DNA of 64,000 nucleotides from Macrostomum hystrix (GCA_950097015.1 CATNEN010000001.1:20832001-20896000); one strand, 5' to 3'. Positions 165 through 56,370 are shown, counted from the first letter of the stretch. A program made the numbers and translations. The notes: generated by a model not told the origin, from the letters alone.

Positions 165-375
165 GCGACCACTGCGACAACATCGACGACTGTGCCAGCC
201 GGCCCTGCATCAACGGGGGCCGTTGTGTGGATGGCAACAGAACGTGAGTTTGCTTTCGTGTTTATTTGATACTGAGAGCTGATATAACACTTTTTCTATT
301 TATTATCTATTCATTTCCAGTTACACCTGCGACTGCTCAGGCTTGGGATTCAGCGGCTCCAGGTGCGAAATCAAC
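165..375 (+). pseudogene. Truncated EGF exons of a further Crumbs-like paralog (5' part lies upstream of window; 3' part cut off by the duplication breakpoint)
   Basis: Exon 165-243 (cgcag|...|gtgag) reads [27 protein letters not shown], a one-EGF-shorter version of exons 6400-6592 and 42895-43087. The next exon starts at 321 (ttccag|) with [18 protein letters not shown] and breaks at ~375, where the sequence switches to the block duplicated at 21456. Confidence 0.75.
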
Positions 376-1099
376 TCAATCAAATCAACCAGGTGCGAGT
401 AAAATATCCCTCCTTCACTTGCTTATATTTCTCCCTTTGGGGACGTAAATGTAACCATTGAAAAGTCAGTATTCCAGATACTTGATCACTCAATTCACTT
501 CTATTTTATACGTTACACTCCAGCCTATTCGGACAGCTCAATCACAGAGCAAATGCTTTAGTTAGGTGTAAATAAATCTATAATTAAAAAAAAATTCATC
601 TATAAAATACGAGTACTGAAAGTTTCATTGCTCTTCATTTTTGCTGTTGTTTTTTATAGATTAAGGCAATATAGGGAGAATTAGATTTTGAGTAAGGATT
701 TCGAACTCGTCTACTTGAATTATTATACTTGAAATTACCTTCTGCCATTCCAGCCTCATGACTTCGCTTGGAAAATACGGAACTCTTTTGCACTGAGCAT
801 AAATCGATAAAAGTGCATCGCTGCAATCGCCACTGATGAGGTCTACTTGCTTTTCAGTTTGATGGTTGCCTTCGCTTCATTTCCAGTTGGTAACGGTGAG
901 TCAGGGCTGCTGCTGTTGCTGATTGTCTCACCTGGAACTGGCCAATGGCTTCCAACAATGGTTTCAAACAATGGGCCATGTCCACGCAGGACATTGGATC
1001 TAAAGTGACGTTTCACTTTCCCTAAAATTCACATCCTAAAAATAAAATTATATTTGCGGGATGTCTGTGGGCAATAGCAATCATTTGGTGACAGTTGAC

Positions 1100-1300
1100 T
1101 CGAAGCCGGTACATGTGCTCTGACGTTTACATTGTTGGGCAGCTTACACACACTGTACCTTGGGTTTTGACAGCTTACTGGTGCGGGACAAGCCCCGAAG
1201 GCTTCTCCCCGCGGCTGCGCTGTAAAAAATGGGGCCTCACTGAGGAATCGAACTCATGGACCATATTGCTAGAGACGGGCACTGACCCCTTTACTTTCCC
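1100..1300 (-). mobile_element. Degenerate tRNA-derived SINE (family A)
   Basis: Shares blocks such as 'acaagccccgaaggcttctccccgcggctgcgc' and 'ggcctcactgaggaatcgaactc' with the minus-strand copy at 57840-58170; boundaries approximate. Confidence 0.6.
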
Positions 1301-1724
1301 CAAACGTCACAACTACCTACTTAATTTCGCGTTCTCCATGTCTGGAAGTGTTAGGTAAAAAGAAAGTTTAGGTTTGTGAAAGTAGGTGATGACAATATAT
1401 GACAGGTGATAACGATATATGAAAGGTGGTATCATTGTGTGGCAAATGTGTGGACATGCGATTTCTTTCGTAGAAGAAGGTGCATGCGAATGTTTGACAT
1501 GCGATTCAAGTCCACTATCGTTTTACTTCTCGCTTTTTGAGTAGTGTGTAGCGCAACGTTTTTATCGTATGATTCACTCGCGGCACAGCACAATGAAACC
1601 GGCGGCGTCTGTCGAAACTGTCGAAACGGCGGCGTCTGCAGACAAGGCAAAAGCTCCGCGTCACTTGCTACAGCGGCTACTTTGGTAATCGAAGTCTTGT
1701 ATGTTATGTTCACCTGGGAAACAC

Positions 1725-3147
1725 TCCTAACTCCCCATCCTCCTCACTTCGCCATCCTCCTCACTCCCCATCCTCCTCACTCGCCATCCTCCTCACTCCC
1801 CATCCTCCTCACTCCGCATCCTCCTCACTCCCCATCCTCCTCACTCCGCATCCTCCTCACTCCCCATCCTCCTCACGCACTATCCTCCTCACTCGCCATC
1901 CTCCTCACTCCCCATCCTCCTCACTCGCCATCCTCCTCACTCGCCATCCTCCTCACTCCGCATCCTCCTCACTCCCCATCCTCCTCACTCGCCATCCTCC
2001 TCACTCCCCATCCTCCTCACTCCCCATCCTCCTCACTCCCCATCCTCCTCACTCCGCATCCTCCTCACTCCCCATCCTCCTCACGCACTATCCTCCTCAC
2101 TCGCCATCCTCCTCACTCCCCATCCTCCTCACTCCCCATCCTCCTCACTCCCCATCCTCCTCACTCCCCATCCTCCTCACTCCCCATCCTCCTCACTCCC
2201 CATCCTCCTCACTCCCCATCTTCCTCACTCCCCATCCTCCTCACTCGCCATCCTCCTCACTCGCCATCCTCCTCACTCGCCATCCTCCTCATTCGGCATC
2301 CTCCTCACTCCCCATCCTCCTCACTCCCCATCCTCCTCACTCCCCATCCTCCTCACTCCCCATCCTCCTCACTCCCCATCCTCCTCACTCCCCATCTTCC
2401 TCACTCCCCATCCTCCTCACTCCCCATCTTCCTCACTCCCCATCCTCCTCACTCCCCATCTTCCTCACTCCCCATCTTCCTCACTCCCCATCCTCCTCAC
2501 TCCCCATCCTCCTCACTCCCCATCCTCCTCACTCCCCATCCTCCTCACTCCCCATCTTCCTCACTCCCCATCTTCCTCACTCCCCATCCTCCTCACTCCC
2601 CATCTTCCTCACTCCCCATCCTCCTCACTCGCCATCCTCCTCACTCCCCATCCTCCTCACTCGCCATCCTCCTCACTCGCCATCCTCCTCACTCGCCATC
2701 CTCCTCATTCGGCATCCTCCTCACTCCCCATCCTCCTCACTCCCCATCCTCCTCACTCCCCATCCTCCTCACTCCCCATCCTCCTCACTCCCCATCCTCC
2801 TCACTCCCCATCTTCCTCACTCCCCATCCTCCTCACTCCCCATCTTCCTCACTCCCCATCCTCCTCACTCCCCATCTTCCTCACTCCCCATCTTCCTCAC
2901 TCCCCATCCTCCTCACTCCCCATCCTCCTCACTCCCCATCCTCCTCACTCCCCATCCTCCTCACTCCCCATCTTCCTCACTCCCCATCCTCCTCACTCCG
3001 CATCCTCCTCACTCGCCATCCTCCTCACTCCCCATCCTCCTCACTCCCCATCTTCCTCACTCCCCATCCTCCTCACTCGCCATCCTCCTCACTCCCCATC
3101 CTCCTCACTCCCCATCCTCCTCACTCCCCATCCTCCTCACTCTCCTC
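1725..3147. repeat. 16-bp minisatellite (ACTCCCCATCCTCCTC)n
   Basis: Direct tandem repeat; produces the spurious 587-aa ORF with 16-aa periodicity (3 x 16 bp). Confidence 0.97.
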
Positions 3148-3469
3148 ACCAAACTGCCAAACCTCCGCCAAACCGTATCCTAATCGACGTATTTTTCCTT
3201 TCAGTGCCTTCTGCTTGTTTAATTTACCAAATACACTTGTTTTGTACTTGAAAATTTCTTTGGTTTCTATCTATGTTGGCTTAATTTATTTGCATTTTTA
3301 CTTTTAGGAAAAAGAGACTTTTAGAAGAACGAAAATAAATTGTCCAATAACAAGCTGAATTACCAGAAGTTCACATAAGATGCAAAAAAGATTTTGTTCT
3401 AGCCAAAGTTAAGGCAATAAGTTTTAGTACATTGTGTACTGCATTTTAATCGCGACTTTTTCATTTCAG

Positions 3470-3572
3470 CAACACTTCCTCTTCTGCTACTGATAGTAAA
3501 CACTGCTGGTTGCTATGATTTTTCTGAAGGCAAGAGTTCTGCACTGCACTCGCCAGCTCTGAGAGAAATAAG
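3470..3572 (+). other. Probable 5'UTR exon of G1 (paralogous exon 23467-23572 for G3)
   Basis: Flanked by tttcag| and |gtgag and conserved in both duplicates. The next acceptor (ttttcag|) is at 4118, upstream of the signal-peptide ATG. Contains a short uORF, MIFLKARVLHCTRQL*. Confidence 0.5.
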
Positions 3573-3589
3573 GTGAGCTGCAAAACCCA

Positions 3590-3957
3590 ACTCTACCCTG
3601 CTCAATTCACCCTCCTGGCCCTATCCACCTGACTCTTCCCTCCTGACTCTACCCTCCTCACTCTACCCTCCTCACTCTATCCTACTCACTCTACCCTCCT
3701 TACCCTACCCTCCTCACTCTACCCTCCTCACTCTACCCTCCTCACTCTAACCTCCTCACTCTACCCTCCTCACTCTCCCTCCTTACTCTACCCTCCTTAC
3801 TCTACCCTCCTCACTCTCCCCTCCTCACTCTACCCTACTCACTCTACCCTACTCACTCTACCCTCCTCACTCTACCCTCCTCATTCTACCCTCCTCATTC
3901 TACCCTCCTTACTCTACCCTCCTTACCCTACCCTCCTCACTCTACCCTCCTCACTCT
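3590..3957 (+). repeat. 14-bp minisatellite (CTCTACCCTCCTCA)n, C-rich on plus strand
   Basis: Direct tandem repeat; reverse complement of the array at 5085-5755. Confidence 0.95.
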
Positions 3958-4207
3958 TTAGACTTGCAGCTTTTTATCTTGAACTTCATCAGCTATTATT
4001 CGAAGTATTAAATTGCTCTAAAATATATTTTCACTCAATTATTAAGTATATTGCTTTTTAAGGCTTTTAAATTAGCTGTTCGAGAAAATACTAAAATTAA
4101 TCGCCCATGATTTTCAGATTTCCCATCGTCTTTGTACAGGCCGCATTAAAAATCGCTAGTTGCTCAGGCAGGCCAGTTGACAGTTGAGTAGTGGACAGTG
4201 AGACCTC

Positions 4208-7200
4208 ATGGCACAAAATAATTCGTTGTATTTCTGGATTTTATTTTGGCTTTTACTGCCTTTGACCACCGCTGTATCATTATCGACTGAGCAGTCATCA
4301 GGTGAGCTCATTAGGCAGGCTTCTCAAGGCGTTGCCAGTTGTCAAGGGTTTCACTGAGATCGGTGAGCATTTTGCCTGGCCTCTCATTTCAGATGTCGAT
4401 GAAGCTGAAGCCACATTGGCGAGGCTGAGGAGAGCCGCCTGCAGTGCTGGCGACTGCCAGAATGGAGGCTTTTGCTGGCCGGGTCCTGTGACTGCGAGTA
4501 CGCCTCCGTGCGTGTGTCCTGAGCCGTACCTTCCCCCCTACTGTGTTGTAGCAAATTCTAATCCAGTTGACTACTGCGCACCCGGACCAGACAACCCCTG
4601 CAAAAACGGAGCCACCTGCAACCGAATCGCCGTCAGTCCCTTCTACAGCTGCAGCTGCGTTCCCGGATTCACAGGTAAACAATCACTTTATTTAGCAAGA
4701 TAAAATTTCTTACCTACCACGAGGTTAAAAATCTATAAAAATGCAAATTAGTAAAATATGTTCATGCTCTTTTTTCATTTCCTTTCAACACAAACACACG
4801 AGCGCATTCGGCAATATAAAAAGCGAAGATTAGAGAAATTCTCTTGGACAAAGTTCCAATGTTAAGACAATTGTTTCTATCGGTTGCAAGAAGGTCCACT
4901 GAGCTTGCTGATTGTACCTATTTATGTGGAAAAGTGTACCTGAAATGGGAACTCATGAGCGAATGGGAAATACAGAAGAATGAAGCTTGTGTTTTGTTGG
5001 TAAAGTGTCAAGTGAAGAGGATTAGAGTTATGAAGCTTATGCTCAGGACTGTTGGGGTGGAGGCTAGAGTGAGGATAATAAACTGAGCAGGAGAGTAGAG
5101 TGAGGAGAGAAGACTAGGGGTGGACTTAGGAGGGTAGTGTGAACGTACTCAGGAGGTAGAGTGAAGGGATAGAGTAGGGAGGGTAAAGTGAGTAGAATTG
5201 AGTAAGGAGGGTAGAGTGAGGAGGGTAGAGTGAGGAGGGTAGAGTGAGGAGGGTAGAGTGGGGAGGGTAGAGTGAGGAGGGTAGATTGAGGAGGGTAGTG
5301 TGGTGAGGGTAGAGTGGGGAGGGTAGAGTAGAGAGGTAGAGTGAGGAGAGTAGAGTGAAGGAGGGTAGAGTTGGGAGGGTAGAGTGAGGAGGGTAGAGTG
5401 GGGAGGGTAGAGTGAGGAGGGTAGGGTTAGGAGGGTAGAGTGGGGAGGGTAGAGTAGAGAGGGTAGAGTGACGAGGGTAGATTGAGGAGGGTAGAGTGAG
5501 CAGGGTAGAGTGAGGAGGGTAGAGTGAGGAGGGTAGAGTGGGGAGGGCAGAGTGAGGAGGGTAGAGTAGGGAGGGTAGAGTAGAGAGGGTAGAGTGGGGA
5601 GGGTAGAGTGAGGAGGGCAGAATGAGGAGGGTAGAGTGGGGAGGGTAGAGTAGAGAGGGTAGAGTGAGGAGCGTAGAGTGGGGAGGGTAGAGTAGAGAGG
5701 GTATAGTGGGGAGGGTAGAGTGAGGAGGGCAGAATGAGGAGGGTAGAGTGGGATCGAGTGGATTCTCAAGTCAGACGTTTCAAAGCCGATAAGAACAGAA
5801 AATGAGGTCATCTTCTGATGCTTAGAATATTGTTGCTTGACGGCAACTACTGCTCAGGCTCTCGTGTGAACTCAGCATACTCCAGTTTAAGTCAAAACTT
5901 TTACTTGCAGCTCCAGCCGAGCTTCTTTCGCCTAACTAACTGTTACGAAGCTCCAATTTTTAACTATGAAGGTAAAGGATCGCAGAGTTTGACATTTAGC
6001 GAAAAATTCACTCGCAAGTTTTTTGAAAAGCGACCACTTGAAAACAAATGATTTTCGCGAGCCACAGAAATTTTTAGCCAGTACATTCTTTGCTAACACT
6101 GGCAAGCATCAGGTATGTTTCACCACAATGGTTATGAAGCAGATTGTCTTGAGTCATAGAAACCATTATAATTAATTCTCTAGCCCGCGCTCATTTTTGA
6201 AATCTATTAAAGATTTTCACGTGTTGGCCCTGCGTCAGTTTTTTCAAACGGCGGCATTTCGCTCGAATTTCGATTGTGAAGTTGATTGAAGAAGTTGCCG
6301 ATAGCACCAGAATGAGCAAAAATATCTAAAAATGTTTCAGTTAGGCAAAAACGATATTTCAAATTGACGCGAAAATGAAAATCTTTTGAACAACCGCAGG
6401 CTTCAGCTGCGAAATCAACATCGACGACTGCGCCAGCCGGCCCTGCATCAATGGCCAGTGCACAGACCTGGTGAACAGCTACAACTGCAGCTGCTACAGC
6501 GGCTGGGAGGGCTCCAACTGCGGCACCAACCATGACGACTGCTTCGCTGGCGCCTGTCTCAACAGAGGTCGTTGTGTGGACGGCAACAAAACGTGAGTTG
6601 CTTTCGTGTTTATTCTAACCTCAAAGAGCTTGCGCATCTTGCTAGCATTCTGATTTTCAGATACACCTGCGACTGCTCAGGGTTGGGATTTAGCGGCTCC
6701 AGGTGCGAAGTCAACATCGATGACTGCGTAGGCAATCCCTGCATAAATGGTCTGTGCTCAGACGGTGTGAAGGACTACAGCTGCAGCTGCTACACAGGCT
6801 GGGAGGGCTTCAACTGCTCAGTTGACACAAACTACTGCCTGCCAATGCCCTGCCAGAATGGAGGCCTGTGCAGCGATGGCAACTCCACGTGAGTGCAAAA
6901 TGGCATCGCTCGCCAGTCATCTGAGAAAGTATATGCACTCGTATATGGCCTACTCTTCACCAGGCGCATTTGTAAGAAGCTCATTTCACTTTGTATCCAT
7001 ATTGATAAAACATCTTAAAAAATAATGACACAGTTCTTTAATTTTTGCACATTGTTTGTCTCATATTCAGGCTCGCAGTTTGTCCTATGTCTCTTGGTTG
7101 CCTTTGAAATTCTTGCTTTTATTCAATATTCCTTTTGGTCATTATGCCCACTTTCCTGATTACCAATTTGGAGATGTACTGTATTGAATGTACAGAAAGT

Positions 7201-10200
7201 ACAGTTCTGAATGCTTCGCAATCACGTTTTTACAGAACAGTGTAAAAGACGGGCAGCCCTCCTGAGTGGGCACTGCCTGTGTTCTGACTTCTGTCCGGTT
7301 CCTAAAATTTATTCTTTCAAAGCGCCTTTGATACGAAAGTGCCATCTTCAAATTAAACCCAAAAGTCCCAAAAATATCTAAATGCTTTCCTCATATCCGG
7401 GGGGTCAGTGGCAGAGCGGTTAACGCTTTTGCCTCTCGCACCAAGGTCCTGATGCGTACTTACTGGCTTCTTTCTGTCAGCAGTTTCCTGGCATTTTGAA
7501 GTGTCTTCCAAGCTCACAATCGTTATTGGATATTTCCATGGCATTCATTATACAAGCAGCATTCTTGTACTAACAGCGAAAAATCATTGCGCATGTGCTG
7601 CGCAATGAAATCTAGCTAGTGTGGTCTCTAACTGGAGCCGCTCCTCCCCTTCCTGCCTACTGAACGTCTACCCGATCTACGAGCTACTAGCACTTGCGGG
7701 TGTGTTTATACTAATCCTACCCTTCACATGCATGCCGTAGTCTGAACTCAAACTTCTAGCTCACCAAGTGACTTACAAAATATTTCTTCTTGTACGAAAC
7801 ATGTTTCAGTTACAACTGCGACTGCTCGCGCATCGACTTCCAAGGCGTCAACTGCAGCTCCAAGATCGACGACTGTCTTGGTAACAATTGTCAGAACGGA
7901 GGCCGCTGCGTTGACGGTGTCAGACGCTACACCTGCGACTGTACAGACACGGGATTCAAAGGTGCCTTCTGCGAGATCAACACAGACGACTGTGCCAGCC
8001 ATCCCTGCATTAATGGTCTGTGCACGGACCTTGTGAAGGACTACAACTGCAGCTGCTACAGAGGCTGGGAGGGCAAGAACTGCTCAGTTGACACAAACTA
8101 CTGTGTGCCATCGCCCTGTCAGAATGGAGGCCTGTGCAGCAGTGATGGCAACTCCACGTGAGTGTTCAATTCAATATTAATACTAAAAAACATTTATAAT
8201 TAATCACAGGATAATTAGACTTTTATTAGTACATTACTCGTATTTGTACTAATAGTCAGCAACTAACAATCAACCCGTGGTTGATGCTGAATAAAAAATG
8301 GTAAAAAATTATAGGAGTCTCTTGTACGAATTAGTCGAAGCCTCTGAATTTTTTGCTCTCTTGCTAAAAGCTGCTTAATTTAGCACAAAGTAATTTAACA
8401 TAAATCACGTTAGAAAAACTTGAGTACATATATAGCAAAAAAAATTAAACAGCTACACCTGCAGCTGCTATGCGGGGTTCGGCGGCAAGAACTGCAGCGT
8501 CAGGCTGACCGGCTGCGACTCCACGCTGTGTCGGAATGGCGCCACCTGCGAGCCGGTTCTCTTAAGGGAGCTGCCGACACCTGAGCACGGACACCTGTGC
8601 ACCTGCACCGCAGGATGGACGGGCCCTCAGTGCAACCTCACAACCCTGGTCTCATTCAACGGCTCCACCAGCTTCAGCGCCCTGCTCAGCATCGCAGCCT
8701 CGAGCAGCTCGGCTGACTGGACCTTCGAGCTCTCATTCTGGAGCAGTCTCACCCAGTTTGATCTGATTCGGCTGTCCTCAGACTCGGGACTCATCCGAGT
8801 CGGTGCTCACAACTCCAGCCTCGTGCTGCTGCTGCTGAATAGCAGCTCATCGTCTGTGATTGGTCAGACCAAGTGGCCAATCAGTGAAAGTTTGGCTGCT
8901 GCTGATTGGCTCACACTGTCAGTCAGCCTGACCAATGGCAGTGCGACACTGACTCGGACGGGGTCGTCAGGAGTGAGGCAGTCTCTCACACAGCTGGTTG
9001 ACGGACTGTCGCACACATTCAAGCGAGGCTCAGTGTCAGTTCGGGTCGGAGGCGACGCAGCATCGACCAGTGGGGGCTTCCGCGGCTGCGTGCGGGATCT
9101 GCGACTCGCGACTTCCAACTTGACATTCATCGCCATGGAGACCACGGTGGAGTCGAGCAACGCGACCTGGGGAGTGTGCAGTCGATCGGTGCAATGCGGC
9201 AGCCCCTCGCCCTGTGAGCTTACGAGCTCGAGGTGCTTGGATGTGTGGAATGACTTTTTGTGCCAGTGCGCAGCGGACTTTGGTGGCCGTAACTGCTCTG
9301 TGCGGCTTCCGTCGTTCTCATTCGGACTGGGTGGAAACGCGTCCTCAGCGAGCTTCGCGTCAGTGCCCGCCGTCTCAAGCGTGTTCGGCGGCGACTCGTG
9401 GATGATCGAGCTGAGGCTGGTGACTCTGTCTCCGGGAGCGTTTCTGATGCTGCTGGGCGACCCGAGCGACTCGGCGACCACTCCGCGACTGCTCGTCACG
9501 GTGAGTGAGGACTGAACAATGTTTGTGTTTTCTAGCAGATCAGATTTCCGTACAATGCCTCGTTGTCCTTCCTCAGATTGATTCCACTGGATGTCTGTCT
9601 GCCCAGATTCTGCTTAGCGACGGTCTTCTGGTCGCAACGCTGACGTCCTCGGACTCTGTGGCTACTGGGAACTTTGTCTCTGTGAAGATCTACTTGTCTA
9701 TTTCAAATCGCGTGTTGTCGCTGACAGTTGAGTCGGCTGTAAAGTCAGCATCGCTGAGCAGTTTGAGTCCTCTGTCGCAGCCGTCGGGTCAGCTGATCGT
9801 CGGTGGCTTCAACGGAGCACCGTCAGCCAGGTGGGGCAGATCGAAACGATCTGTGTCGGTCCTGCCAGCCAGCGTGGCCTCCGCTCTGCCCGCCGGTACG
9901 ACTGCATTCTTTGGCCTGCTCGCTGCTCTTCGAATAAACGGTGACCAGCCTCTGATTTCGGGTCCCGTATCAGCCAGCTCGCTCAGCAGCCTCACAGGTG
10001 CCATACCTGCCACTTATTCTTCTGGAGTTACCTTAGCAACGCTGGAGAACAATGCTTGCGCTGTTTATGAGCCTTGCAAGAACGGGGCCACCTGCTCAAA
10101 CGTGTTTCTCAACTCGTACTCGTAAGAGTTCTCCGATATTTCATTGAGTGTTTCTGTGATCAAAATGAATGTTCCACAAAGAGCGAATTTCGAATCCAGC

Positions 10201-11240
10201 TGCCAATGCCACCCTGGATATTCCGGAACCAACTGCTCAACGGACTATCCCGACTGCCATGAGAAGCCGTGCGGCAGTGAGGAAGTGTGCTTGGAGAAGA
10301 GCGACCCGGTCAATTACAATATAAAGATTCTGCCACCGCCATTCAATGGAGCTTTCAGCTACGGGTCGGCTGCTGGATTCACCTGTGTAAAATCGTATGG
10401 TAGGACAACAGCAAGCTTTCATTAGTTCTTTGAAATGGCAAAGTATTTGATAACTGGCGACTTTGTGACGGTATCTACAGGTTTTATGAATCAACTCAAG
10501 AAGAAAATGTGCAAATGCAGTCTTTACCTATCCTACTCACGAACTATTGCAGGGTATCGGAACAGCTTCACAGGCTCAGCCTCACAAACTAACAGCTTCA
10601 CCACCTCAGCCGGATTCTATGTGATTCTTGTCGTGGTTTCTGCTGTTCTTTCGGCTGCAATCTCTATCTCAGTTTTTTTTCTTCTAATTAGACATGTAAG
10701 GATCGCTGCTTTCTTTCATGTATTGCTCATTTTGAGTTGATAAAACACAACAAATTCCTTTACAGGGTCACTTGGCAAGAAACCGTTCTGATGATTATAC
10801 CAATCGATCGCTATCAGGACATCAACAACAGGTAACTTGGTGATTTTATTTATCCAGAAATCATTATTCTCTGAAAATGCAATTCTGTTTCAACAAGATT
10901 CTTCGAATCATCTTAGAAGCGGACTGATGGAGGTTCCGATGCAACGGTTGATGCAACTTATACTATTGCTGACCGGAACACTGTGCCTGTAAGTCTGTTT
11001 TCCACACCTGGGGCCCATTGATTTGAGCTGGATTGTTTTTCAAAACCTTTACTCAAATATTTTTCGTCCTACTCAATTATTGCCTAACTCAAACATGCGT
11101 CGAACGTTTTTTAGACAGCCGAAAACAGCTGTTTGACACCCAGCAGTCCGCCGGTTGCCGCAGCTGAACTTGTCGAAGATGTGTACGACACGACAATCGA
11201 CTCAAACTATGCCAACATGGACCAGAAATACAAATGCTAG
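4208..11240 (+). CDS. crb-like: G1: Crumbs-derived type I membrane protein: signal peptide, RLRR site, ~10 EGF, LamG, EGF, LamG (with RSKR), EGF, truncated Crumbs-signature EGF, TM, Tyr-motif tail
   Basis: In-frame exons: 4208-4301, 4393-4674, 6400-6592, 6661-6888, 7810-8157, 8453-9500, 9577-10121, 10200-10399, 10553-10695, 10766-10831, 10917-10988, 11115-11240. Signal peptide MAQNNSLYFWILFWLLLPLTTAVS; Ca-binding EGF consensus (NIDDC..PC.NG); Crumbs-type pre-LamG motif FGGKNCS..LTGC...HG..C.C..GWTG.QC..TT.VSF.G; TM FYVILVVVSAVLSAAISISVFFLLI; tail ends EDVYDTTIDSNYANMDQKYKC*. Tail exons are less certain than ectodomain exons. Confidence 0.85.
5085..5755 (-). repeat. 14-bp minisatellite (GAGGGTAGAGTGAG)n, inverted relative to 3590-3957, in G1 intron
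   Basis: Direct tandem repeat, purine-rich on plus strand. Confidence 0.95.
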
Positions 11241-20000: not shown

Positions 20001-20170
20001 AGTCCCCACAAGATTTGATATATTGATTGCACTAACAGCCTCTGTGCCAGCTCGTATACCGTCTGTGTTCGTAAATTCGTGATAAACTTTTTTCATACTC
20101 CAACTCACAGACCGAGAGCGAAGAGCTGTACGTTGAACCAGACAGCATTCATCTGTCTGATCAGGATATT

Positions 20171-20203
<33 letters not shown>

Positions 20204-21097
20204 GTATGCGATTCCTTCAAGCTTTTTATTTTTGCTCTTACCCTTGCGCAGGAAAATAATCCCGTGCTTGCTAGCTAGAACTTTAGGGCGCAGAATCTCG
20301 ATAGTCAGTAGCTAAACTAGTATTCTAAATTGTTAGAGTTTGGTTAGAATGCTGAATAAATTCCTGACATTTCTGCAGCAGCTGTGTGTCTGCCGTTTCA
20401 GCTGAGTGAGCTGTTCCCCATACGAAGTCGAAAACTCGAAAATTTGAAAATCCTTTTTTTTGGGCCTTTATATATCGATTTTATCTACTAGCAGAGCTAC
20501 CGTGCGGAAAACAAGACAAAATAAGAAACAGACAAGCGGCTGCTAAAATGTACAGAAACTGTTCAGCGTTATGCTGAAACAAACAATTTGGAATACACAT
20601 TGCGACAGACATAAACAACAATGGTCCGAAAAATGGTGTTTAGCGAGGTGTTGGTTCTCCATTTTATATTCTGAGCTCCATGACTGATTCGAGTAAGATC
20701 AGCTGCATCACCTTTGTCAAATGCCAGCCCGAGCCAGAGGCTGTCTACGTTGTGCCCGACAGTGTCCTAAGCCAGCCAATGGAGCTGCTTAATCAAGCGA
20801 ACGGACCACCGCCGAAGTTGCCGAAGCCGAAACCCAGGGGCCAGCAGCAGCAGCAGCCCCCGACTGTGGAACTCAGTAGCCATCCAAACAACAGAGCTAG
20901 TCAGCTGAATATTGTGGTAAGATGCTCAAACAAGACTGTCCAGGTTGTTGCACTCAGTTGCTTACAGCTGATCCGTGCTAAAAAGTTATCCCTGAAACTT
21001 TAACAGCGCCAAGACACGGCAGCAAACAACGGTGAAGCCGGTGGATCAGTGGAAAATGAGTACGATGTGATTGACAATGCTCCGAATTCAGCGAATG

Positions 21098-21135
<38 letters not shown>

Positions 21136-45100: not shown

Positions 45101-46457
45101 ATGACTTTGTGTGCCAGTGCGCAGCGGACTTTGGTGGCCGCAACTGTTCCGTGCGACTTCCATCGTTCTCATTCGGACTGGGTGGCAACGCGTCCTCAGC
45201 GAGCTTCGAGTCAGTGCCCGCCGTCTCAAGCGTGTTCGGCGGCGACTCGTGGACGATCGAGCTGAAGCTGGTGACTCTGTCTCCGGGAGCGTTTCTGATG
45301 CTGCTGGGCGACCCGAGCGACTCGGCGACTACTCCGCGACTGCTCGTCACGGTGAGTAAAGTTTACTCGTAGTCCCGGCGAATTGCTTCAGTAGTGATTT
45401 CATACATATACCATACATACTGCTCACATTTCAGATTAACCCTGCAGGCCTTCTGTTTACCCAACTGCTGCTTAGCAACGGCTCCCTTGTCGCATCGCTA
45501 ACATCCTCAGTCTCTGTGGCTACGGGGAGTTTTGTCTACGTAAGGATCTACTTATCGATCAAGGGACATGATGTTGAGATGTCTTTGTCAGTGGCGTCGT
45601 CAATGAAGACAGCATCACCGAGCTGTGCAGCCGTTCTGCCGCGGCTGTCCATTGAGCTCATCGTCGGTGGCTTCAGCGGAGCCACTGCAGCTTCCGCACT
45701 GAAGATGTCTCTGCCGAGCAGCAGTGGCAGGAGGCTGAGGAGATCTGCTGCCGTCCTGCCGGTGAGCGTTGCATCAGCAGCCGGCAATGTGACGGCATTC
45801 CGCGGCGTCCTGAGCTCCATCAGACTGAACGGTCAAAACACACTGCTTCTGGGATCCGTGGCATCCAGCTTGGTTGAGCGCCTGCCAGGAGCCGTGCTGC
45901 CGAGCTCCTCGGAAGGCGTGGCCATCGGTGCCACCTCGGAGAACTTCTGCGACACTTTCAAGCCATGCAAGAATGGAGCGACCTGCACAAATGTTTTCTA
46001 CTTTTCGTACTCGTAAGTGAGAAGGCTGTTAATGATGGCCTGAAGAACTGGGAATTTTATCGCCTAACACAATTTCAAGCTTTTCTTGAATCTCTCGAAT
46101 CTGCAGCTGCAAGTGCGCCAGCGGGTGGCGAGGTGCCGAATGCACAGACAGGGACTTTGCTCAGCCTAGTGGTCTCTCTACTGCCGTCGTCATCGGCGTT
46201 GTCGTTTCCGTCGTGGCAGTGATTTGCGCAGTGGCAGGTGAGCAGAATAAACAGTTTTATTCACGATTTCAGTCACGATGATGAGTGGCACCACTTTCCA
46301 TTGATCAGGGATTGTGACCCTGAAGATCTTGCGCTCGTCAGCAGGGCAGGAAAAGCCGCCCTCAACAGACATCGACGAGGACGGTCCGACAGGTGTTCGA
46401 ATGGGACACCTGAGACCTGAGGGAACGAAACCGTGCAAACAAGATATGTTTTTCTGA
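42182..46457 (+). CDS. crb-like: G4: Crumbs-derived type I membrane protein: signal peptide, RLRR, ~9 EGF incl. signature EGF, LamG, EGF, LamG (with RRLRR), EGF, TM, short tail ending QDMFF
   Basis: In-frame exons: 42182-42272, 42364-42645, 42895-43087, 43490-43812, 44072-45351, 45435-46012, 46107-46237, 46309-46457. Signal peptide [23 protein letters not shown]; [25 protein letters not shown]; tail [44 protein letters not shown]. Confidence 0.88.
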
Positions 46458-47351
46458 ACAGTGAAGCAATTGAATTCAAGTTTTCTCATTACATTTTGTA
46501 ATCTGAGGTGGAAACAATAATCTTAAACTAAGCAAACCTTTGGCTTCTCGTGTGTCACTTTGTCACGGTAGGGAAATGTTCTAAATGCCGGAAATTTTCC
46601 TGAAGGGTATATTCGTAACTATGCCTGGCCCCTTTTTAACAATTATTGCCTGATATTTAAGAGCGCATAATCAACCTTAAGTTCGTAACCCGCCTACGAA
46701 CGCATCGGGTTGCTGCATGTTTTTTTGGAAATTCTATTAATGGTATGGAACGTTTGTATCACTATTAATGACGAAGTCTTCAGCTATGTGACAAAGCTCC
46801 TAGCGTTTGTTACTATTTTGTATTTTAAATATTTCAGCCCACTTCTATAAGAAAGTTTGTCAAAACAAAAAAATCTAATGAAGCGGTAAAACAGCTGTAG
46901 TTTTTTTATCGAACTGTTCTACTTATATATTTAAATGATTCATCATCTGAATATCTCTTGTCTTGTTAATGGATCAAGTCAAGATTTTTTTTCTTTCTTG
47001 GTTCTCCTTACATTTTTACCTTCCTAAATAAAACTTTTAACCCTCCCCCAAATGGCCAATTAACACGTAGTTAACGCCTTATGACGTTTCCAGTAGCAGA
47101 CAGAAAAAAATGAGTGGACTAGTAGCGGTAGATATAGGCAATAAGTTTATAAGTTGTGTGGGGCTTCTATTTTAAGATGTTCGTAAGAATTCTACGAAAA
47201 TACGAGTAAACTCTAATGAGTTAAGCACAGCAACAATATTTAAAATATGAGCTTCAAAAACTGATGTACTATCGCAACACAGAAGAAAACTAAGAAATTC
47301 GCAGCGCTTAAGCACACGTTAAAAAAACAATTTAAATATAAGGAAAGATAT
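44072..47351 (+). repeat. Duplication shared by G4 and G5 (partner 53984-~57330)
   Basis: Near-identical exons and introns up to the stop codon; downstream flank progressively more diverged but alignable. Confidence 0.9.
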
Positions 47352-48412: not shown

Positions 48413-49958
48413 ATGTGATTAAGCCAAGTCGCAAAAATATTCAGAACAAAATTTATTTTGTGGTACGCTTGTTTTTTAGCGACAAAAGAAATCTAACCCG
48501 ACAGTGTAGCTAGTAAAAGAGAAAACGCGGAAGAAACAGGTGTTCGGGCAAACGCTGTTTGTCTTTAAATTCGTTCAAATACTTCATTGGAACAGAAATG
48601 ATTATAAACTGATGCCTAAAGTACGCGATATGAGTATTAAAATAAAATCCATGCTATTGGTGATATATTATCTGATATACAATATAACATATAAGATAAT
48701 ATTTCTTTATTTTGCCTTTTCTTTCGCTCGTCTTGCTATAGTTTCTCTTTTTGCGCAAAATCAATTTATTATTTTTGTTTATTGTATTTCAATAACCATT
48801 TTCTGTATTTATTTACGCTTTTGCCAATAATGCTCCATCGTGTCTTGCAATGTTACTTTAATAAATTCGCTTATTATTTTTTTGTCACAGCTCATTTTCT
48901 CTCTTTTGTAAAAATTTGAACGGTCCTGGTTATTTAATATCCAGTTTTATATTAAGCAAATACATATTGCATAATGTTGGCAAAACAGGCTTCTTGCCTT
49001 AGCAAAATCGACTACTGCAACTAGATGGACCTTTTCCATCGTGCGAGCCAAGCATTTACAAAAGAAGCGACCAATTTCAGATGTCTTGTTACGCTCGTAA
49101 ACAGTCGAATTCTACGCTGACAAGCACAAACTCGAGCGCTATTGTATCGACCATGAGAAATAGTTAACCAAAATTTAAACACAATGGCCTGCAGAAGGTG
49201 AGCTTGCTTTCTATGTACTCAAATAGTACGCGTTTTAATATTGCTCGATTAAGGTGAAGGATGCTAAACCGCCTTTAAGTCATGTGCGGGCAAATTTTCG
49301 ACGAACTGTAGGTTTTAACTCAATTACCTTGCGTCTGTATAATTTGTTATCGAAAGTTATGAAACTCGAATGGAAATGCCAGCAAACCCAGCAGGACTGC
49401 TCATCTTTCCTTTTGAAGTTTGTTTTACCTGAGGTAAATAACTGCGTGAACTTTCTTTTGCTACCCTTTATTAATTTAGTTGATCCAGTCTTGTGCTGGC
49501 GGGTGTAGGGTCATTGTTGTGCTGGTGCTGCTATTAGAGACGCACAAGCTTCAACTCGAATGTAGAGAATTTATTCAGCTTTCTAATCAAACGAACATTT
49601 TGAAAGTCTGTTTGCACGACACGGAATTTGTCAGAATTTTTCTCCAAGTAGTGCTTTAGAATTTCCTATCTACTTAGTGTATTTTCGGGACAGCCAGTCA
49701 GGCCAAACTGGTCCGGAAAATGGGGGTTTGGCGGGGAGTTCTCTCCAGTTTCTATTCTCTAGAGCTCTAGTATGGGCCTGACCAACAGATTAAAAAGGAG
49801 AGGGAGTATAAAAGTTTACCAGGAACTATGAATTTCATAGTACAGAAAGCTGTAAAGCGAGTTATCTCACTTAAAGACCCGTGATTATATAAATGAAGTG
49901 AATGAAAATCAATAAACAAAATGACAAAATGACATCTTTTTCCTTCTTTACGAGTCAG

Positions 49959-52900
49959 ATGAGGCTGTGTTGCTCACTTTGGAAATCGCGGCAAATGCTT
50001 TTCTACCTGATATCGCTACTTGCTGCTGTACAAGTATGTACAGTGCTTTCTTGTGGGATTAGCAACAACGCGTGTCAGAACGGAGCAACGTGCAAGAAAT
50101 TAGGTCAAAGCAACCAATGCATCTGCCTTCCTGGATATCAAGGTTAGTTTGTTAACCAAAATATTCACAAATATATATTTCCTGTTAAACAACGTCTCTG
50201 CAATTTCAAATGACCGATCAATTCAAATATGCTTCCTGACTCACAGCTCGAAACCGGGTTTCTCACAAGGACGTCTCCAGTTTCTGGACTGGAAGGCTTT
50301 TTTAGCTATGACGACTTGTGGCCATTTTCCCAGCCAACAGACTTGGAGACAGACAAAATGAAGCACGATTTAAGAATGACTTATTTTACGTTTCATGCAT
50401 CGCACACCGTTTCTTATGTGAGATCTCGTTAAAAAAGCACGAAATATAAGTTACATTTCGTAACTTTCGTAACTTTCGTAAGTTACATATTAAGTTAAGT
50501 TATAAGCTTTTTATGTAATTATAGAAATTTGAGAATGGGTAGCAAAAAGAGATGAAAAAGGTAAGAGAATTAGAGAACAGAAATTCGCAGTTGCATACTA
50601 AGAAACAATACGGCAAACGTTGAAAGCAAAGCTGAATTACAAAAGCTCAGCCTTCTGCAAGACAAACAAAAATGAGCCTGAACTTAAAAAGCGTTTATTA
50701 TTAAGGCATAGCGAGGAATAAATCCACCACCCCAATAAATACCATATAGTCATTGCCATTAAAACTAATATACTATAGAGTATACGCTCGTAGACAGTCA
50801 AAATCGCAGGCAATGCAATACATATTCAACTGCTCAGCTGGCTGCTCCGGAAAGCTTGGCAATTAGCCTCTCTTTTTCTCTTGCACTCCTTGCCTTGGGT
50901 TGACAAGTCAATTTGGCAAGGTTTTTCATCATACAGTTGATAATTGACTTTAAAAATGCATCCTTTAAGTCGTCTCCTCTTGTGCACATCGTTCGGCCCA
51001 TGGAATATTTCACATCTCTATTTCACATAGAGATCACCGTCGATAAGTTAGTTGACCAGCTCGCCGAACAGCATCATTTGGTTGGCAGCACCAAGGAACT
51101 TGCTCCGAACCTCAGCGTTCTGGCGAATTTATTCTAAAATCTGCCAGCAGTGTCTTAGCAACTCAAACGCCACTTCCATCGGCATTGAAAGGCCAACGCA
51201 ATTGATTTCTTCTAGGAAGGCACACGCAGATGACGGAACAGAGGCTTTTAGTTCAACAGGCAGCAAGTTATTGGAGGCGATTAGGAGCTCTCAGCAAGAT
51301 TTGCAATTGTTCTAGCGGATAATTCTTTTGACACCGCTGGACATTGTAAATCGCTGGCATTCTGAGCTTTTGAGGCTGAACGCCCTCAGCCATTTTCCAA
51401 CTGGACCGGATTTCCTAGTGGATAGCTATATGAAGCTGACGGTATTCAGTGTTTCATGATTTGCATATCCACTTTTACGAGTATAACCGTATGCAGAGCA
51501 CTTGTACACCATTTTTTTTATTGAGATAATTAGAATGTCTTAACAGTGTTTTCGATTTTCAGTATTTTAATTAGCAGCACAGCAGTCAAGCGAAAATTCC
51601 GTCCATTTCAGAATATGTAGTCTTAAAACATCCCCTTCTGTTTGACCGATGAACGAGCGTGCAGTTTATTGCTACTCATCGTAGAGCAATTTGAAACTAG
51701 CAACAGTTAGCTGTACACCAATAAATGGTTCTTTTTTGCACATCTCGAAAACTGCGTACTCTCCACTGTGTACCCCTAAGTAATCACTATTCCTATGCCT
51801 GTCACCCTCACCGAGGTTTTTATGTGAGGACATTGTCTTGCTGCACATTTCCTCCTTCTTGAACGAACAAAAGGGCTTCTACCACCCCAATCCCACTAAC
51901 TGTTCCACCATCCCTTTTAGGGCCTCCAGATCCCCATGGCCATAACTTGTAGAAAAAATCGTGAGTTTAAAGCTCTTCTTCCAGTCCAAATGTTAACCGG
52001 AGACGTCATTAGTTTCTCAGAAGATTTGTCTCGGAGTATGGAGTGACAGCAAAGTTTGAAATTCGACAGCATACGAGTTTATGTAACTCGTGATTGGTGG
52101 CAACTATGCATCTTTAGATATTAGGATATACTTTTCTCGAATAAGAAACTGCCCGCATATTAACTTGGTGCTAATACGATGCTCGTATCTTAATCACATT
52201 TGCTAAATATCTCTAAACCGTTAAACAACTGCAGGCGACCACTGTGAAATCAACATCGATGACTGCGCCAGCCGGCCCTGCATCAACGGCCAGTGCACAG
52301 ACCTGGTGAACAGCTACAACTGCAGCTGCTACAGCGGCTGGGAGGGCTCCAACTGCAGCACCAACCATGACGACTGCTTCGCTGGCGCCTGTCTCAACGA
52401 GGGCCTGTGTCTGGACCATAATGGAACGTGAGTTCGCTTCATTATTTGGTAGTGATATAGATATCACTAAAAATCAGCTTTTTCTGAACTAATACTTTAA
52501 GTCAGTTTATCGTCCTGGGTGTAAAAATAAATGTATCAGAGTGATGATTTTCATGTTGTGAATTATTGACACATCGCCCACTATCACCCCATTGAGATTT
52601 AGAGTTGTTTCAGTGTTCGTGACTTTTGCCTCACAATCTCGGGAATGTATTTTCACAACGCGAATCACACAGCTGATTGCCTCAGTTTACAAACTTTTTT
52701 GCTTAAAGATCTGGAAATTTGTTACTATGAAGTGTAATTACTGGTTTCTATCTTCGCATGTATATCTGCTCCTGGGTTTTGATCTGCAAAGGTCTCTTTG
52801 ATTATCAAATGTCAAACGCTTCGCATTGGGAAAGTCAATCAGGCATGGCCACGAAAATACTTTCTACCTTAGTAATTATTAGCAATTAAAAAAGCAAATT

Positions 52901-55900
52901 ATATAGGGGCTGCGAAAAAAATTACTAATTATATAAAAAAATCTATATACACCTGCAAAATTATATTCACAATATCAATCTCAGCTTCAGCTGTGACTGC
53001 ACGGGAACTGGCTACTATGGCAGCAGGTGCCATATCAACATCGACGATTGCTTGGCGAATCCCTGCAAAAACGGAGCCACCTGTTTTGATGGTTTTAAAA
53101 GTTACTCATGCTCCTGTTATGACGGCTATAGTGGAAGAAACTGTTCTGAAGACTTGCTAGACTGTGTTCCTCACAAGTGCAAAAATAATGCTCTTTGCCT
53201 AGAACGCAGCAATCCAGCCCTGTACAACAACCCATTACAATGGTCGGTTCAGCTACTCCTTAGCAGCCGGATTCTTGTGTGTCTGTCCAACAGGTAGCAA
53301 ACGCGTCCTTGTGTTCTATTTTGTTTTTAGGCCAAGTATGAGCGAATACAAATATTTGCAATGCAATTGTTTGCAATTGTTTGTGAATGCAAGGGATTGT
53401 TACTGTTACTTCCATATTGTGTCACACAAATAAGCAGATTTATTTGTCCAAAGATTTAAGTTTTTCAAAGTTCAGGTCCACATCTTAGACTTGCGAAGCT
53501 ATTTCTATACGATTTAATAAATACGAGCTAAGTTTAATGAATTTTGTTTTGTGCTTCTGTTCTGCACTTTAGGCCTATTCCGTTTTCGTTGGACACTTTA
53601 GTCTCACAGCTCTTACCGAATTTATTACAAGCTAGTTTGCACTTTATGAGTCGGAAGGTTTGGAAAGTTTTTACAACTCTGGGTCTGTGATATCAGAAGC
53701 AAACGGAATACTCAAAATAATCAACTTTCATTGACTGTCTTCCTGAGTCTTTCACATTCTATTTCTAGGTCTTCAATAATTTATTCTGGGTTGTATTGAC
53801 TAACTGACTTAACACCACACATACATACAAACAGAATAATATAATTGGCTCGTTAATAGGAATAAATATGCGAGCGCTTCTTCATAGACATACGAGTATA
53901 AAAAAGACATATCTTAATAGACATATCAAACGTTGAAATCGCAAAAAACTTTCTACAAAAAAAAGAAAAAAAACTAACGACAGGTGCTTACGGGGCAACC
54001 TGCTCTGTGAACCCGGACGACTGCGTGCTGCCCGGCACCAAACAGAGCGTGTGCGCTCACGCCTCGAGCTGCACGGACGGCCTGGCCTCATTCACCTGCC
54101 ACTGCCTGCCCGGATATGAGGGCGCCAACTGCTCGGTGGACATCAACGAGTGCGAGCTGTTCCGTCAGCCGTGTCGCAACGGAGCTGTCTGCAAGGACCT
54201 GCTGGCTGACTACGCCTGCACCAACTGCCCGTCAGAGTTCGGCGGCAAGAACTGCAGCGTCAGGCTGACCGGCTGCGACTCCGCGCCGTGTCGGAATGGC
54301 GCCACCTGCGAGCCGGTTCTCTTGAGAGAGTTGCCGACACCTGAGCACGGACACCTGTGCACCTGCGCCGAAGGATGGACGGGCTCTCAGTGCAACCTCA
54401 CAACCCTGGTCTCATTCAACGGCTCCACCAGCTTCAGCGCCCTGCTCAGCATCGCAGCCTCGAGCAGCTCGGCTGACTGGACCTTCGAGCTCTCATTCCG
54501 GAGCAGTCTCACCCAGTTCGATCTTCTTCGGCTGTCCTCAGACTCGGGACTCATCCGAGTCGGTGCTCACAACTCCAGCCTCGTGCTGCTGCTGCTGAAT
54601 AGCAGCTCATCGTCTGTGATTGGTCAGACCAAGTGGCCAATCAGTGAAAGTTTGGCTGCTGCTGATTGGCTCACACTGTCAGTCAGCCTGACCAATGGCA
54701 GTGCGACACTGACTCAGACGGGGTCGTCAGGAGTGAGGCAGTCTCTCACACAGCTGGTTGACGGACTGTCGCACACATTCAAGCGAGGCTCAGTGTCAGT
54801 TCGGGTCGGAGGCGACGCAGCATCGGCCAGTGGCGGCTTCCGCGGCTGCGTGCGGGATGTGCGACTCGCGACTTCCAACTTGACATTCGTCGCCATGGAG
54901 ACCACGGTGGAGTCGAGCAACGCGACCTGGGGAGTGTGCAGTCGATCGGTGCAGTGCGGCAGCCCATGGCCCTGTGAGCTGAGCACGAGCTCGAGGTGCT
55001 TGGATGTGTGGAATGACTTTGTGTGCCAGTGCGCAGCGGACTTTGGTGGCCGCAACTGTTCCGTGCGACTTCCATCGTTCTCATTCGGACTGGGTGGCAA
55101 CGCGTCCTCAGCGAGCTTCGAGTCAGTGCCCGCCGTTTCAAGCGTGTTCGGCGGCGACTCGTGGACGATCGAGCTGAAGCTGGTGACTCTGTCTCCGAGA
55201 GCGTTTCTGATGCTGCTGGGCGACCCGAGCGACTCGGCGACTACTCCGCGACTGCTCGTCACGGTGAGTAAAGTTTACTCGTAGTCCCGGCGAATTGCTT
55301 CAGTAGTGATTTTTATACATATACCATACATACTGCTCACATTTCAGATTAACCCTGCAGGCCTTCTGTTTACCCAACTGCTGCTTAGCAACGGCTCCCT
55401 TGTCGCATCGCTAACATCCTCAGTCTCTGTGGCTACGGGGAGTTTTGTCTACGTAAGGATCTACTTATCGATCAAGGGACATGATGTTGAGATGTCTTTG
55501 TCAGTGGCGTCGTCAATGAAGTCAGCATCACCGAGCTGTGCAGCCGTTCTGCCGCGGCTGTCCAATCAGCTCATCATCGGTGGCTTCAGCGGAGCCACTG
55601 CAGCTTCCACACTGAAGATGTCTCTGCCGAGCAGCAGTGGCAGGAGGCTGAGGAGATCTGCTGCCGTCCTGCCGGTGAGCGTTGCATCAGCAGCCGGCAA
55701 TGTGACGGCATTCCGCGGCGTCCTGAGCTCCATCAGACTGAACGGTCAAAACACACTGCTTCTGGGATCCGTGGCATCCAGCTTGGTTGAGCGCCTGCCA
55801 GGAGCCGTGCTGCCGAGCTCCTCGGAAGGCGTGGCCATCGGTGCCACCCCGGAGAACTTCTGCGACACTTTCAAGCCATGCAAGAATGGAGCGACCTGCA

Positions 55901-56370
55901 CAAATGTTTTCTACTTTTCGTACTCGTAAGTGAGAAGGCTGTTAATGATGGCCTGAAGAACTGGGAATTTTATCGCCTAACACAATTTCAAGCTTTTCTT
56001 GAATCTCTCGAATCTGCAGCTGCAAGTGCGCCAGCGGGTGGCGAGGTGCCGAATGCACAGACAGGGACTTTGCTCAGCCTAGTGGTCTCTCTACTGCCGT
56101 CGTCATCGGCGTTGTCGTTTCCGTCGTGGCAGTGATTTGCGCAGTGGCAGGTGAGCAGAATCAATTGTTTTATTCACGATTTCAGTCACGATGATGAGTG
56201 GCACCACTTTCCATTGATCAGGGATTGTGACCCTGAAGATCTTGCGCTCGTCAGCAGGGCAGGAAAAGCCGCCCTCAACAGACATCGACGAGGACGGTCC
56301 GACATGTGTTCGAATGGGACACCTGAGACCTGAGGGAACGAAACCGTGCAAACAAGAAATGTTTTTCTGA
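49959..56370 (+). pseudogene. crb-like: G5: G4-like Crumbs-derived gene with a different first exon (signal peptide plus one EGF) and a 14-bp frameshifting deletion; tail would end QEMFF
   Basis: Exons: 49959-50142, 52235-52427, 52985-53293, 53984-55263, 55348-55925, 56020-56150, 56222-56370. Exon 52985-53293 is 309 nt versus 323 nt in G4. The frame breaks at ~53235 ([25 protein letters not shown]); all other exons are open. Confidence 0.78.
50830..51420 (-). mobile_element. Possible degenerate DNA-transposase (P-element/THAP9-like) C-terminal relic in G5 intron 1
   Basis: Stop-interrupted minus-strand translation IIR.NNCKSC.ELL...GLSMP...C..FH...SIINCMMKNLAK resembles P-transposase C-termini; judged by eye only. 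Confidence 0.3.

Follow-up and report, generated by a model that had tools for sequence, protein, structure and literature searches.

A probable lineage-specific array of crumbs paralogues with a shared ectodomain module and alternative cytoplasmic tails in Macrostomum hystrix

Crumbs is the textbook low-copy determinant of apical polarity, and the function of its ectodomain is poorly understood. To our knowledge, other animals carry one to five crumbs genes, dispersed in the genome. In this work, we analyzed a stretch of 64,000 nucleotides from the flatworm Macrostomum hystrix (C1:20832001-20896000, hereafter the window; the assembly comprises 220 Mb in 42 contigs), in which a preliminary description, made from the sequence alone, had listed five same-strand type I membrane genes (G1 to G5) plus a fragment, all carrying Crumbs hallmark segments, and had read them as a polarity gene co-opted into a diversifying recognition-receptor family. 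The question raised by this locus is twofold: whether these genes descend from crumbs, and, if so, what a tandem cluster of them represents. The genes of the window were modelled, and 120 kb of flanking DNA was added and mapped alongside it. Our results indicate that the window probably covers the middle of a tandem array of crumbs paralogues that is specific to the lineage of this Macrostomum-type flatworm. The best-supported reading, which we consider a likely one, is that of a lineage-specific crumbs array in which a shared, homogenised ectodomain module is coupled to alternative intracellular tails.

Crumbs ancestry and the canonical gene of the array

All genes of the window lie on the plus strand, their EGF and LamG coding segments being seen as stop-to-stop frames, and the nearest database relatives of their proteins, 54-71% identical, belong without exception to Macrostomum lignano. 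Homology searches were run exon by exon, and joined translations were not used as queries. In a phmmer search of 1.84 billion representatives with the 425-residue EGF+LamG exon, M. lignano relatives came first (54-65% identity), and after Macrostomum the matches spanning positions 15-365 of the query were "protein crumbs-like" entries of starfish, scallop, tick and others; two long proteins, P0004 and P0005, ranked above the annotated crumbs through repeated EGF matches. The long signature EGF of Crumbs, with the pattern C.[EQ][RK]S...Y...F.Y..A[AS]G[FY].C, is present in G1, G2, G3 and G4 and is disrupted in G5 by a frameshift; the preliminary description, which had placed this hallmark in all the genes, is correct for the first four. 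Among 155 retrieved proteins, the same EGF was found only in ERLI-tailed Crumbs, in four probable truncated or variant-tailed Crumbs and in the Macrostomum family, and 65 of the 77 blastp matches to the signature motif were ERLI-tailed. The isolated LamG segments, too, matched ERLI-tailed proteins almost exclusively (5 of 6 matches for LamG1, 1 of 2 for LamG2 and 11 of 12 for LamG3; mixed Crumbs/Notch/fibropellin set). The M. lignano relatives bear the automatic UniProt names Notch, Delta-like and Cubilin, which are misleading, since the signature EGF is absent from non-Crumbs matches and the LamG segments match little other than ERLI-tailed proteins. Pfam confirmed the EGF domains, and a PDB sequence search with the EGF+LamG exon returned EGF modules of Notch, Delta and factor X only, with nothing for LamG.

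The preliminary description had proposed a search for a separate, ERLI-ending crumbs. Back-translated PEERLI-stop and GTYxP(15-25 residues)ERLI-stop each gave one match in the 220-Mb genome, both at C1:20904383-20904481 on the minus strand. The sole canonical crumbs thus exists, but it is not separate: it is the last member of the same array, lies 8.4 kb past the end of the window on the opposite strand and is convergent with the plus-strand genes. Its tail reads ...NRRKETGTYGPS...PPPEERLI-stop and includes GTYGPS. A regular-expression scan of the tails found the GTYxPS FERM motif only in this canonical neighbour, G3 having a degenerate PYLVPS; a C-terminal ERLI is absent from G1 to G5, which end in KYKC (G1), FTKI (G2), DMFF (G3 and G4) and EMFF (G5); and three interleaved LamG domains were found in none of G1-G5, the canonical neighbour having all three.

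Compared with canonical Crumbs (Drosophila Crb, vertebrate CRB1 and CRB2), the genes of the array (i) carry the signature EGF before the LamG region, in the same EGF/LamG order, (ii) have a single predicted transmembrane (TM) segment, with a tail exon entered through an intron inside it, and (iii) find their best non-Macrostomum matches in Crumbs, the crumbs gene of the same array sharing with them a 96-98% identical exon. In contrast, G1-G5 lack one to three of the LamG domains as well as the GTYxPS FERM and ERLI PDZ motifs, the tails in the array are Q[DE]MFF or Tyr-rich and reach about 300 residues, and there are about 14 tandem copies. Eyes shut, Slit and EGF arrays of the Notch/Delta type share the generic EGF repeats, whereas the signature EGF is absent from non-Crumbs matches, the four probable truncated or variant-tailed Crumbs aside. 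A generic EGF family of the Notch/fibropellin kind was rejected on the evidence of the signature EGF and the adjacent canonical gene. Taken together, the signature EGF, the LamG matches, the nearest relatives outside Macrostomum and the canonical gene within the array argue that G1-G5 are Crumbs-derived, as first proposed. Judged by sequence, the paralogues are module-deletion variants of a single canonical crumbs, with replaced tails and without one, two or all three LamG domains; the proposal of a polarity gene multiplied and re-tailed is borne out by an array of about 14 paralogues beside canonical crumbs.

The shared ectodomain exon and the cytoplasmic tails

Self-comparison revealed large mosaic duplications. 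Over the final 2.5 kb, G4 and G5 are 97% identical, and the 5' half of G3 is a 91-93% copy of that of G1 (duplication A, about 7.7 kb shared, which contains satellites, DNA on the promoter side and exons 1 to 5 of both genes). The G1-G2 unit is present in three copies with 95-100% identity in most exons (82-95% in exons 1 to 4 of the oldest G1 copy), and all exons of G1 and G2 are retained in frame in all three. Together with the scans of the tails, these comparisons agree with the earlier picture of a tandem, mosaic, recombining cluster with tail classes foreign to Crumbs.

The exon of about 1 kb that encodes LamG1, an EGF and the N-terminal half of LamG2 behaves differently from its surroundings: it is 96-98% identical among the paralogues and the canonical crumbs, whereas the flanking introns are unalignable (40-46%) and the next exon is 63-65% identical. 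A near-identical exon between unalignable introns indicates exon-limited gene conversion, and conversion that includes the canonical crumbs would be the simplest explanation. Maximum-likelihood analysis of the exon separates all eight M. hystrix copies in the tree from all eight of M. lignano, with 95/92 support and very short branches within each species, and this grouping by species is obtained despite short and G1-type tails and some architectures that are common to both species. A FastTree analysis of the C-terminal half of LamG2 did not resolve cross-species orthologues. The pairwise ratio of non-synonymous to synonymous substitution rates (dN/dS) of the LamG1 exon is 0.40-0.66 with dS of 0.025-0.18, in comparisons between paralogues; between copies of the G1 and G2 units it is 0.14-0.6 (0.14-0.55 for the ectodomains) and never exceeds 1. 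Sliding windows over the LamG1 core contain 0-5 variable amino-acid columns per 30, with synonymous changes equal to or above the non-synonymous ones. Neither the paralogue dN/dS nor the LamG1 sliding windows gave a sign of diversifying selection, and these ratios argue that the LamG1 module is under weak purifying selection.

The tails follow another course. The translated models display what had been described, i.e. Tyr-motif tails in G1 and G2 and short Q[DE]MFF tails in G3-G5. Those of G3 and G4 have 44-46 residues, a length similar to that of Crumbs (about 37), whereas the tail of G1 has 68 and that of G2 about 300. The short tails of G3-G6 (G6 lies downstream of the window) have 44-46 residues and a conserved block, G.R.GH[LI]R...P..Q[DE]M[FY]F-stop, ending in QDMFF in G3 and G4, QEMFF in G5 and QDMYF in G6. 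A phase-1 intron that interrupts the TM helix leads into them; in G3 its position matches that in canonical crumbs and its donor is nearly the same, which argues that the short tail derives by divergence from the tail exon of Crumbs. Outside the array, a genome-wide scan for Q[DE]M[FY]F-stop gave seven matches; six end in a stop, and since none of these six, once translated, has the upstream G.R.GH[LI]R, they are chance matches. In the whole genome, the combination of G.R.GH[LI]R with a following Q[DE]M[FY]F-stop is confined to G3, G4, G5 and G6. In M. lignano, P0064, P0157, P0158 and P0160 end in ...GPTGVRVGHLR...P.PQEVFF, and the cross-species pairs G3/P0157 (KFT...PVPQ), G4/P0064 and G6/P0160 look related. 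Class-II ends, EYFI, EYYV and EFYA among them, are recognised by the PDZ domains of MAGUK proteins of the p55/CASK group. We infer that, in the short tail, GTYxPS was lost and ERLI changed to an acidic-hydrophobic-aromatic-F end that would be a class-II-like PDZ ligand, and it is plausible that this tail may have switched its MAGUK/PDZ partner.

The G1 tail is joined after the TM segment by a phase-0 intron, so that its exons differ from the exon of the Crumbs and short tails. Its C-terminus is ...VYDTTIDSNYANMDQKYKC, and the order of its motifs is common to M. lignano P0010 (PYTFADY ... VYETS.....YDNL). Two genes outside the window have related or further kinds of tail: gene B, which lies upstream, contains VYEMT...YANV and ends in ...VYEMTMDQQYANV...FQLA, and gene A has a PxxP tail that resembles that of M. 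lignano P0029. The G2 tail, conserved across all three copies of G2, contains four YxxP motifs (YEMP, YLDP, YVEP and YVVP), an ITIM-like (immunoreceptor tyrosine-based inhibitory motif) SEYAAV, NEYDVI, PxxP and poly-Q. The G1-type (YxN/YxxM) and G2-type (four YxxP) tails look like phosphotyrosine docking sites for SH2 adaptors, the likely classes being the Grb2 type for YxN and the Crk/Nck type for YxxP. A motif scan found no immunoreceptor tyrosine-based activation motif (ITAM) in any tail, and the translated TM segments contain no charged residue.

In M. lignano, the exons and motifs of the short and G1-type tails are conserved at 46-61% identity. The GenBank models of that species with these two tails come from an RNA-seq-guided transcriptome annotation (PMC5730564), which implies that the relatives are transcribed and spliced, and that these two kinds of tail are old and conserved. 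Three M. lignano UniProt models (P0001, P0003 and P0029) each join two or three adjacent genes of the array by read-through, with internal restarts at ...RRAACSEGDC. Polycistronic precursors and spliced-leader (SL) trans-splicing are documented in Macrostomum (PMC5730564) and may explain these fused models.

Gene models, extent of the array and its genomic setting

The window holds four intact predicted type I membrane genes, a frameshifted G5 and a two-exon remnant (Table 1); the positions and strand given in the preliminary description, four of its five genes and its fragment stand, and G5 does not stand as an intact gene. GT-AG junctions were picked by frame, consensus and homology to M. 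lignano proteins, and the models translate without internal stop.

Table 1. Coordinates of the genes, exons, duplications and conversion tracts discussed in the text (window positions unless a contig is named).
Feature	Position	Strand	Description
Gene remnant	155..399	+	Two partial EGF exons: 155-244 (collapsed exon-3 type) and 283-399 (truncated exon-4 type)
Segmental duplication A	397..8164	+	91-93% identical to 21456-33360
G1	4208..11240	+	11 exons, 1092 aa, all junctions GT-AG
Conversion tract, G1	8477..9500	+	LamG1-EGF-LamG2 N-half exon; 96.8% to G4 44325-45351, 96.4% to canonical crumbs; flanking introns 45-46%
G1 tail exons	10917-10988, 11115-11240	+	TYTIAD, VYDTT...YANM (YxN / YxxM)
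G2	14042..21180	+	10 exons, 640 aa; TM at 17629-17741
G2 cytoplasmic exons	18010-18102, 18820-19170, 20111-20203, 20728-20916, 21007-21180	+	Five phase-0 exons
G3	29160..36989	+	9 exons, 873 aa
G3 tail exon	36832..36989	+	..KFTPAC..SDPYLVPSE..RVRAGHIRSKSVTPVPQDMFF
G4	42182..46457	+	8 exons, 1008 aa
Segmental duplication C	44069..46634	+	97% identity with 53981-56542; covers the 3' halves of G4 and G5 with their introns
Conversion tract, G4	44325..45351	+	97.9% to canonical crumbs, 98.3% to G5 54237-55263
G4 tail exon	46309..46457	+	Matches tail of M. lignano P0064 (..NGPTGVRVGHLRPDGMPPCPQEVFF)
G5	49929..56370	+	LamG1 + LamG2; different first exon, later exons 97-99% identical to G4
G5 first exon	49929-50142	+	Putative signal peptide and one EGF
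G5 exon 3 (signature-EGF exon)	52985..53293	+	14 nt shorter than G4 exon 4, frame shifts
Canonical crumbs	C1:20904383-20918900 (window-relative 72386-86860)	-	EGFs, signature EGF, LamG1, LamG2, LamG3, TM, tail

By these GT-AG models, the module sets of G1-G4 differ from one another, as had been noticed: LamG1 and LamG2 are present in G1 and G4 (and in G5), LamG3 alone in G3 and none in G2. In G1, a putative signal peptide and an RLRR site are followed by 12 EGF-pattern repeats, LamG1, an EGF, LamG2, an EGF, the signature EGF, which adjoins the TM segment, and the Tyr tail. G2 has a putative signal peptide, five EGF-pattern repeats plus the signature EGF, the TM segment and its long tail; G3 has 13 EGF-pattern repeats including the signature EGF, then LamG3, an EGF, the TM segment and a 46-residue tail ending in QDMFF; and in G4 a putative signal peptide and an RLRR site precede EGFs, the signature EGF, further EGFs, LamG1, an EGF, LamG2, an EGF, the TM segment and a 44-residue tail with the same end. 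G5 repeats G4 with a new first exon, in agreement with the preliminary description. This exon has a weak match to the N-terminus of M. lignano P0160 (45% over 31 residues, E 3e-5), which hints at an exon of an older type. The deletion of 14 nt in G5 exon 3 shifts the frame, and G5 is thus broken as assembled; downstream of the frameshift 712 codons remain open in their own frame, and we infer that it is a recently broken copy. The remnant has no signal peptide, TM segment or tail, and it stops at the boundary (397) of duplication A.

Hydropathy analysis gave one C-terminal hydrophobic segment per model; an N-terminal one was flagged in G2 and G3 only, those of G1 and G4 being read by eye. The putative signal-peptide exon is short and followed by a 91-nt intron in G1, G3 and G4, while that of G2 lies upstream of a 17-mer satellite in intron 1. 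Many introns lie inside EGF repeats, in phase 2, at DGN.T / [YF].C.C. A basic, furin-like R-x-R-R site directly precedes the first EGF cysteine in G1 (4429-4443), G3 (29381-29395) and G4 (42400-42414); its variants are ARLRR/AAC in these three genes, RERRD in canonical crumbs, RTRR/AAC in M. lignano and SRQRS in G2, and the site could mark an N-terminal propeptide.

The array extends far past the window and spans about 160 kb, from about -75 kb to +87 kb relative to it. It contains about 14 plus-strand units, including the three tandem copies of the G1-G2 pair, and at least eight complete copies of the 425-residue EGF+LamG exon lie on C1 from 20.757 to 20.915 Mb. Outside the window there are nine more plus-strand paralogues, namely genes A-D, two additional G1-G2 pairs, which lie upstream, and G6 (-75116 to +69420, window-relative). 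An assembly artefact was considered and rejected: the copies differ in architecture and by many substitutions, and the family is also present in M. lignano, where single contigs hold several members. Our literature search found no paper on a Crumbs expansion in Macrostomum or flatworms.

Repeats are abundant between and within these genes. C/T-rich, strand-asymmetric satellites occupy 1724-3142, 3590-3957, 5151-5750, 22767-23148, 23590-28926 and 30155-31130; their units include a 16-mer (CTCCTCACTCCCCATC) and a 14-mer (ACTCTACCCTCCTC), the GC skew is as low as -1.0 and one array reaches 5.3 kb. The 14-mer satellite lies upstream of both G1 and G3 and its reverse complement in intron 2 of both, so that inverted arrays bracket the signal-peptide and first-EGF exons of these genes, and such arrays may serve as substrates for recombination. 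Further tandem repeats, with units of 16-22 nt, are found at 11658-12326, 14201-15004, 17173-17485, 59834-60888 and 63421-64000; the 17-mer array fills intron 1 of G2, and a 20-mer array lies in the G2 intron that precedes the TM exon. A dispersed repeat of about 250-300 nt (15897-16147, 57899-58170 inverted, and 18516-18794; also L001 1826-2149) occurs in introns and intergenic DNA of the array, with 79.6% identity between two copies. Between G3 and G4, at 39162-39920 (also 38828-40210), there is a Ty3/gypsy-type integrase remnant (Pfam rve 3e-15, Integrase_H2C2 1e-13).

Competing explanations and the meaning of the array

The preliminary description had likened the locus to paired receptors and to allorecognition loci. 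Like KIR, LILR, SIRP and PIR, the array is a tandem cluster in which ectodomains kept near-identical by gene conversion would carry tails of different output, and this part of the analogy survives. It does not extend to the modules, which are of the Ig fold in paired receptors and EGF and LamG in the array, nor to ITAMs and the TM residue required for pairing with ITAM adaptors, both of which are missing from the array; a single ITIM-like motif is present. With Hydractinia Alr and Botryllus FuHC, the array shares clustered type I membrane genes and frequent duplication and recombination. What defines such allorecognition loci is extreme polymorphism among alleles together with hypervariable ectodomains, whereas the LamG1 exon of the array is homogenised and its dN/dS, measured between paralogues, is below 1. 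A diversifying allorecognition or immune-type system, in which variable ectodomains would discriminate partners and activating or inhibitory tails would transmit the outcome, could account for the tandem cluster, its mosaic module sets and its recent duplications, for the joining of different tails to one shared module, a feature of paired receptors homogenised by conversion, for SEYAAV and the many Tyr motifs of G2, and for homophilic binding, of which Crumbs ectodomains are capable (PMC3562440). We nevertheless consider it quite unlikely: no hypervariable region is seen, the LamG1 core has few amino-acid changes at a dN/dS of 0.4-0.66, the short and G1-type Tyr tails are conserved between two Macrostomum species, and there is neither an ITAM nor a charged TM residue for adaptor pairing. 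On the same grounds, together with the 96-98% homogenisation of the LamG1 exon, the earlier inference of a diversifying recognition-receptor family is not upheld.

A neutral process of birth and death would instead make most copies functionless or decaying crumbs duplicates of an unstable, satellite-rich region, with odd tails arising by read-through into junk. The G5 frameshift, the two-exon remnant, a dN/dS only moderately below 1, and the big satellites and retroelement remnant between the genes agree with it, but four of the five models have long open frames over 8-11 exons with canonical splice sites, the exons of G1 and G2 are all intact in three copies, and the short and G1-type tail exons are conserved at 46-61% identity in M. 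lignano, whose homologues are RNA-based models; we regard this explanation as rather improbable too. Finally, the units could be alternative exon cassettes or cistrons of one complex locus, joined by cis-splicing or SL trans-splicing much as in protocadherin or Dscam. Their common strand, the polycistronic precursors resolved by trans-splicing in Macrostomum (PMC5730564) and the M. lignano models P0001, P0003 and P0029, which span neighbouring units, would fit. However, every unit has its own putative signal-peptide exon, TM segment and stop codon, M. lignano has complete single-unit models (P0064, P0157 and P0160), and the fused models restart internally at the RRAAC site, as a read-through prediction would give, which makes a single complex locus highly improbable.

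Several observations weigh against the reading of a crumbs array with a homogenised module and alternative tails. Some junctions are uncertain (G1 10399/10553; tandem acceptors 6 nt apart), since the choice of splice sites relied on reading frame, consensus and homology. The Pfam Laminin_G_2 matches are full-length yet sub-threshold (15-19.5 bits against a cut-off of 22.9), and the AlphaFold2 model of the G3 LamG3 exon, built on a 3-row alignment, had a pLDDT (predicted local distance difference test) of 41 and was unusable. The grouping of the LamG1 tree by species could partly reflect independent expansions, and a dN/dS of 0.4-0.66 is weak constraint that could partly be relaxed selection. 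Furthermore, the search for the G2 tail in M. lignano gave no counterpart, and PDZ and SH2 binding is proposed from resemblance to short motifs, which arise by chance.

Notwithstanding, the array of crumbs paralogues with a shared module and alternative tails is the reading we favor. Segmental duplication would have built the array, as in the three copies of the G1-G2 unit and the halves shared by G1 and G3 and by G4 and G5, and exon-limited gene conversion would keep the 1-kb LamG1-EGF-LamG2N exon 96-98% identical, canonical crumbs included. Crumbs ectodomains are reported to interact homophilically (PMC3562440, PMC13507169), so that paralogues with the homogenised module would engage the ectodomain partners of Crumbs, or Crumbs itself. 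The different tails would couple this shared ectodomain to different intracellular machinery. It is tempting to speculate, although we hold it unlikely, that Macrostomum Crumbs is a receptor family in which one specificity, kept by conversion, is read through PDZ-scaffold or phosphotyrosine/SH2 tails, and that cell-cell Crumbs contacts would trigger different signals in different cells; this would be the logic of paired receptors applied to a polarity protein, possibly in recognition of tissue, gametes or self and non-self. Transgenesis is established in M. lignano (PMC5730564), and, with its transcribed homologues of the short-tail and G1-type genes, makes the idea testable.

The locus is a clean case of exon-limited gene conversion, with about 97% exon identity beside unalignable introns. 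It also amounts to a natural domain-swap series, in which one ectodomain exon is kept near the canonical sequence while the tails are swapped, and it supplies defined constructs for probing the function of the Crumbs ectodomain. Altogether, the array suggests that this ectodomain serves a binding function that is worth keeping even without the FERM/PDZ tail.

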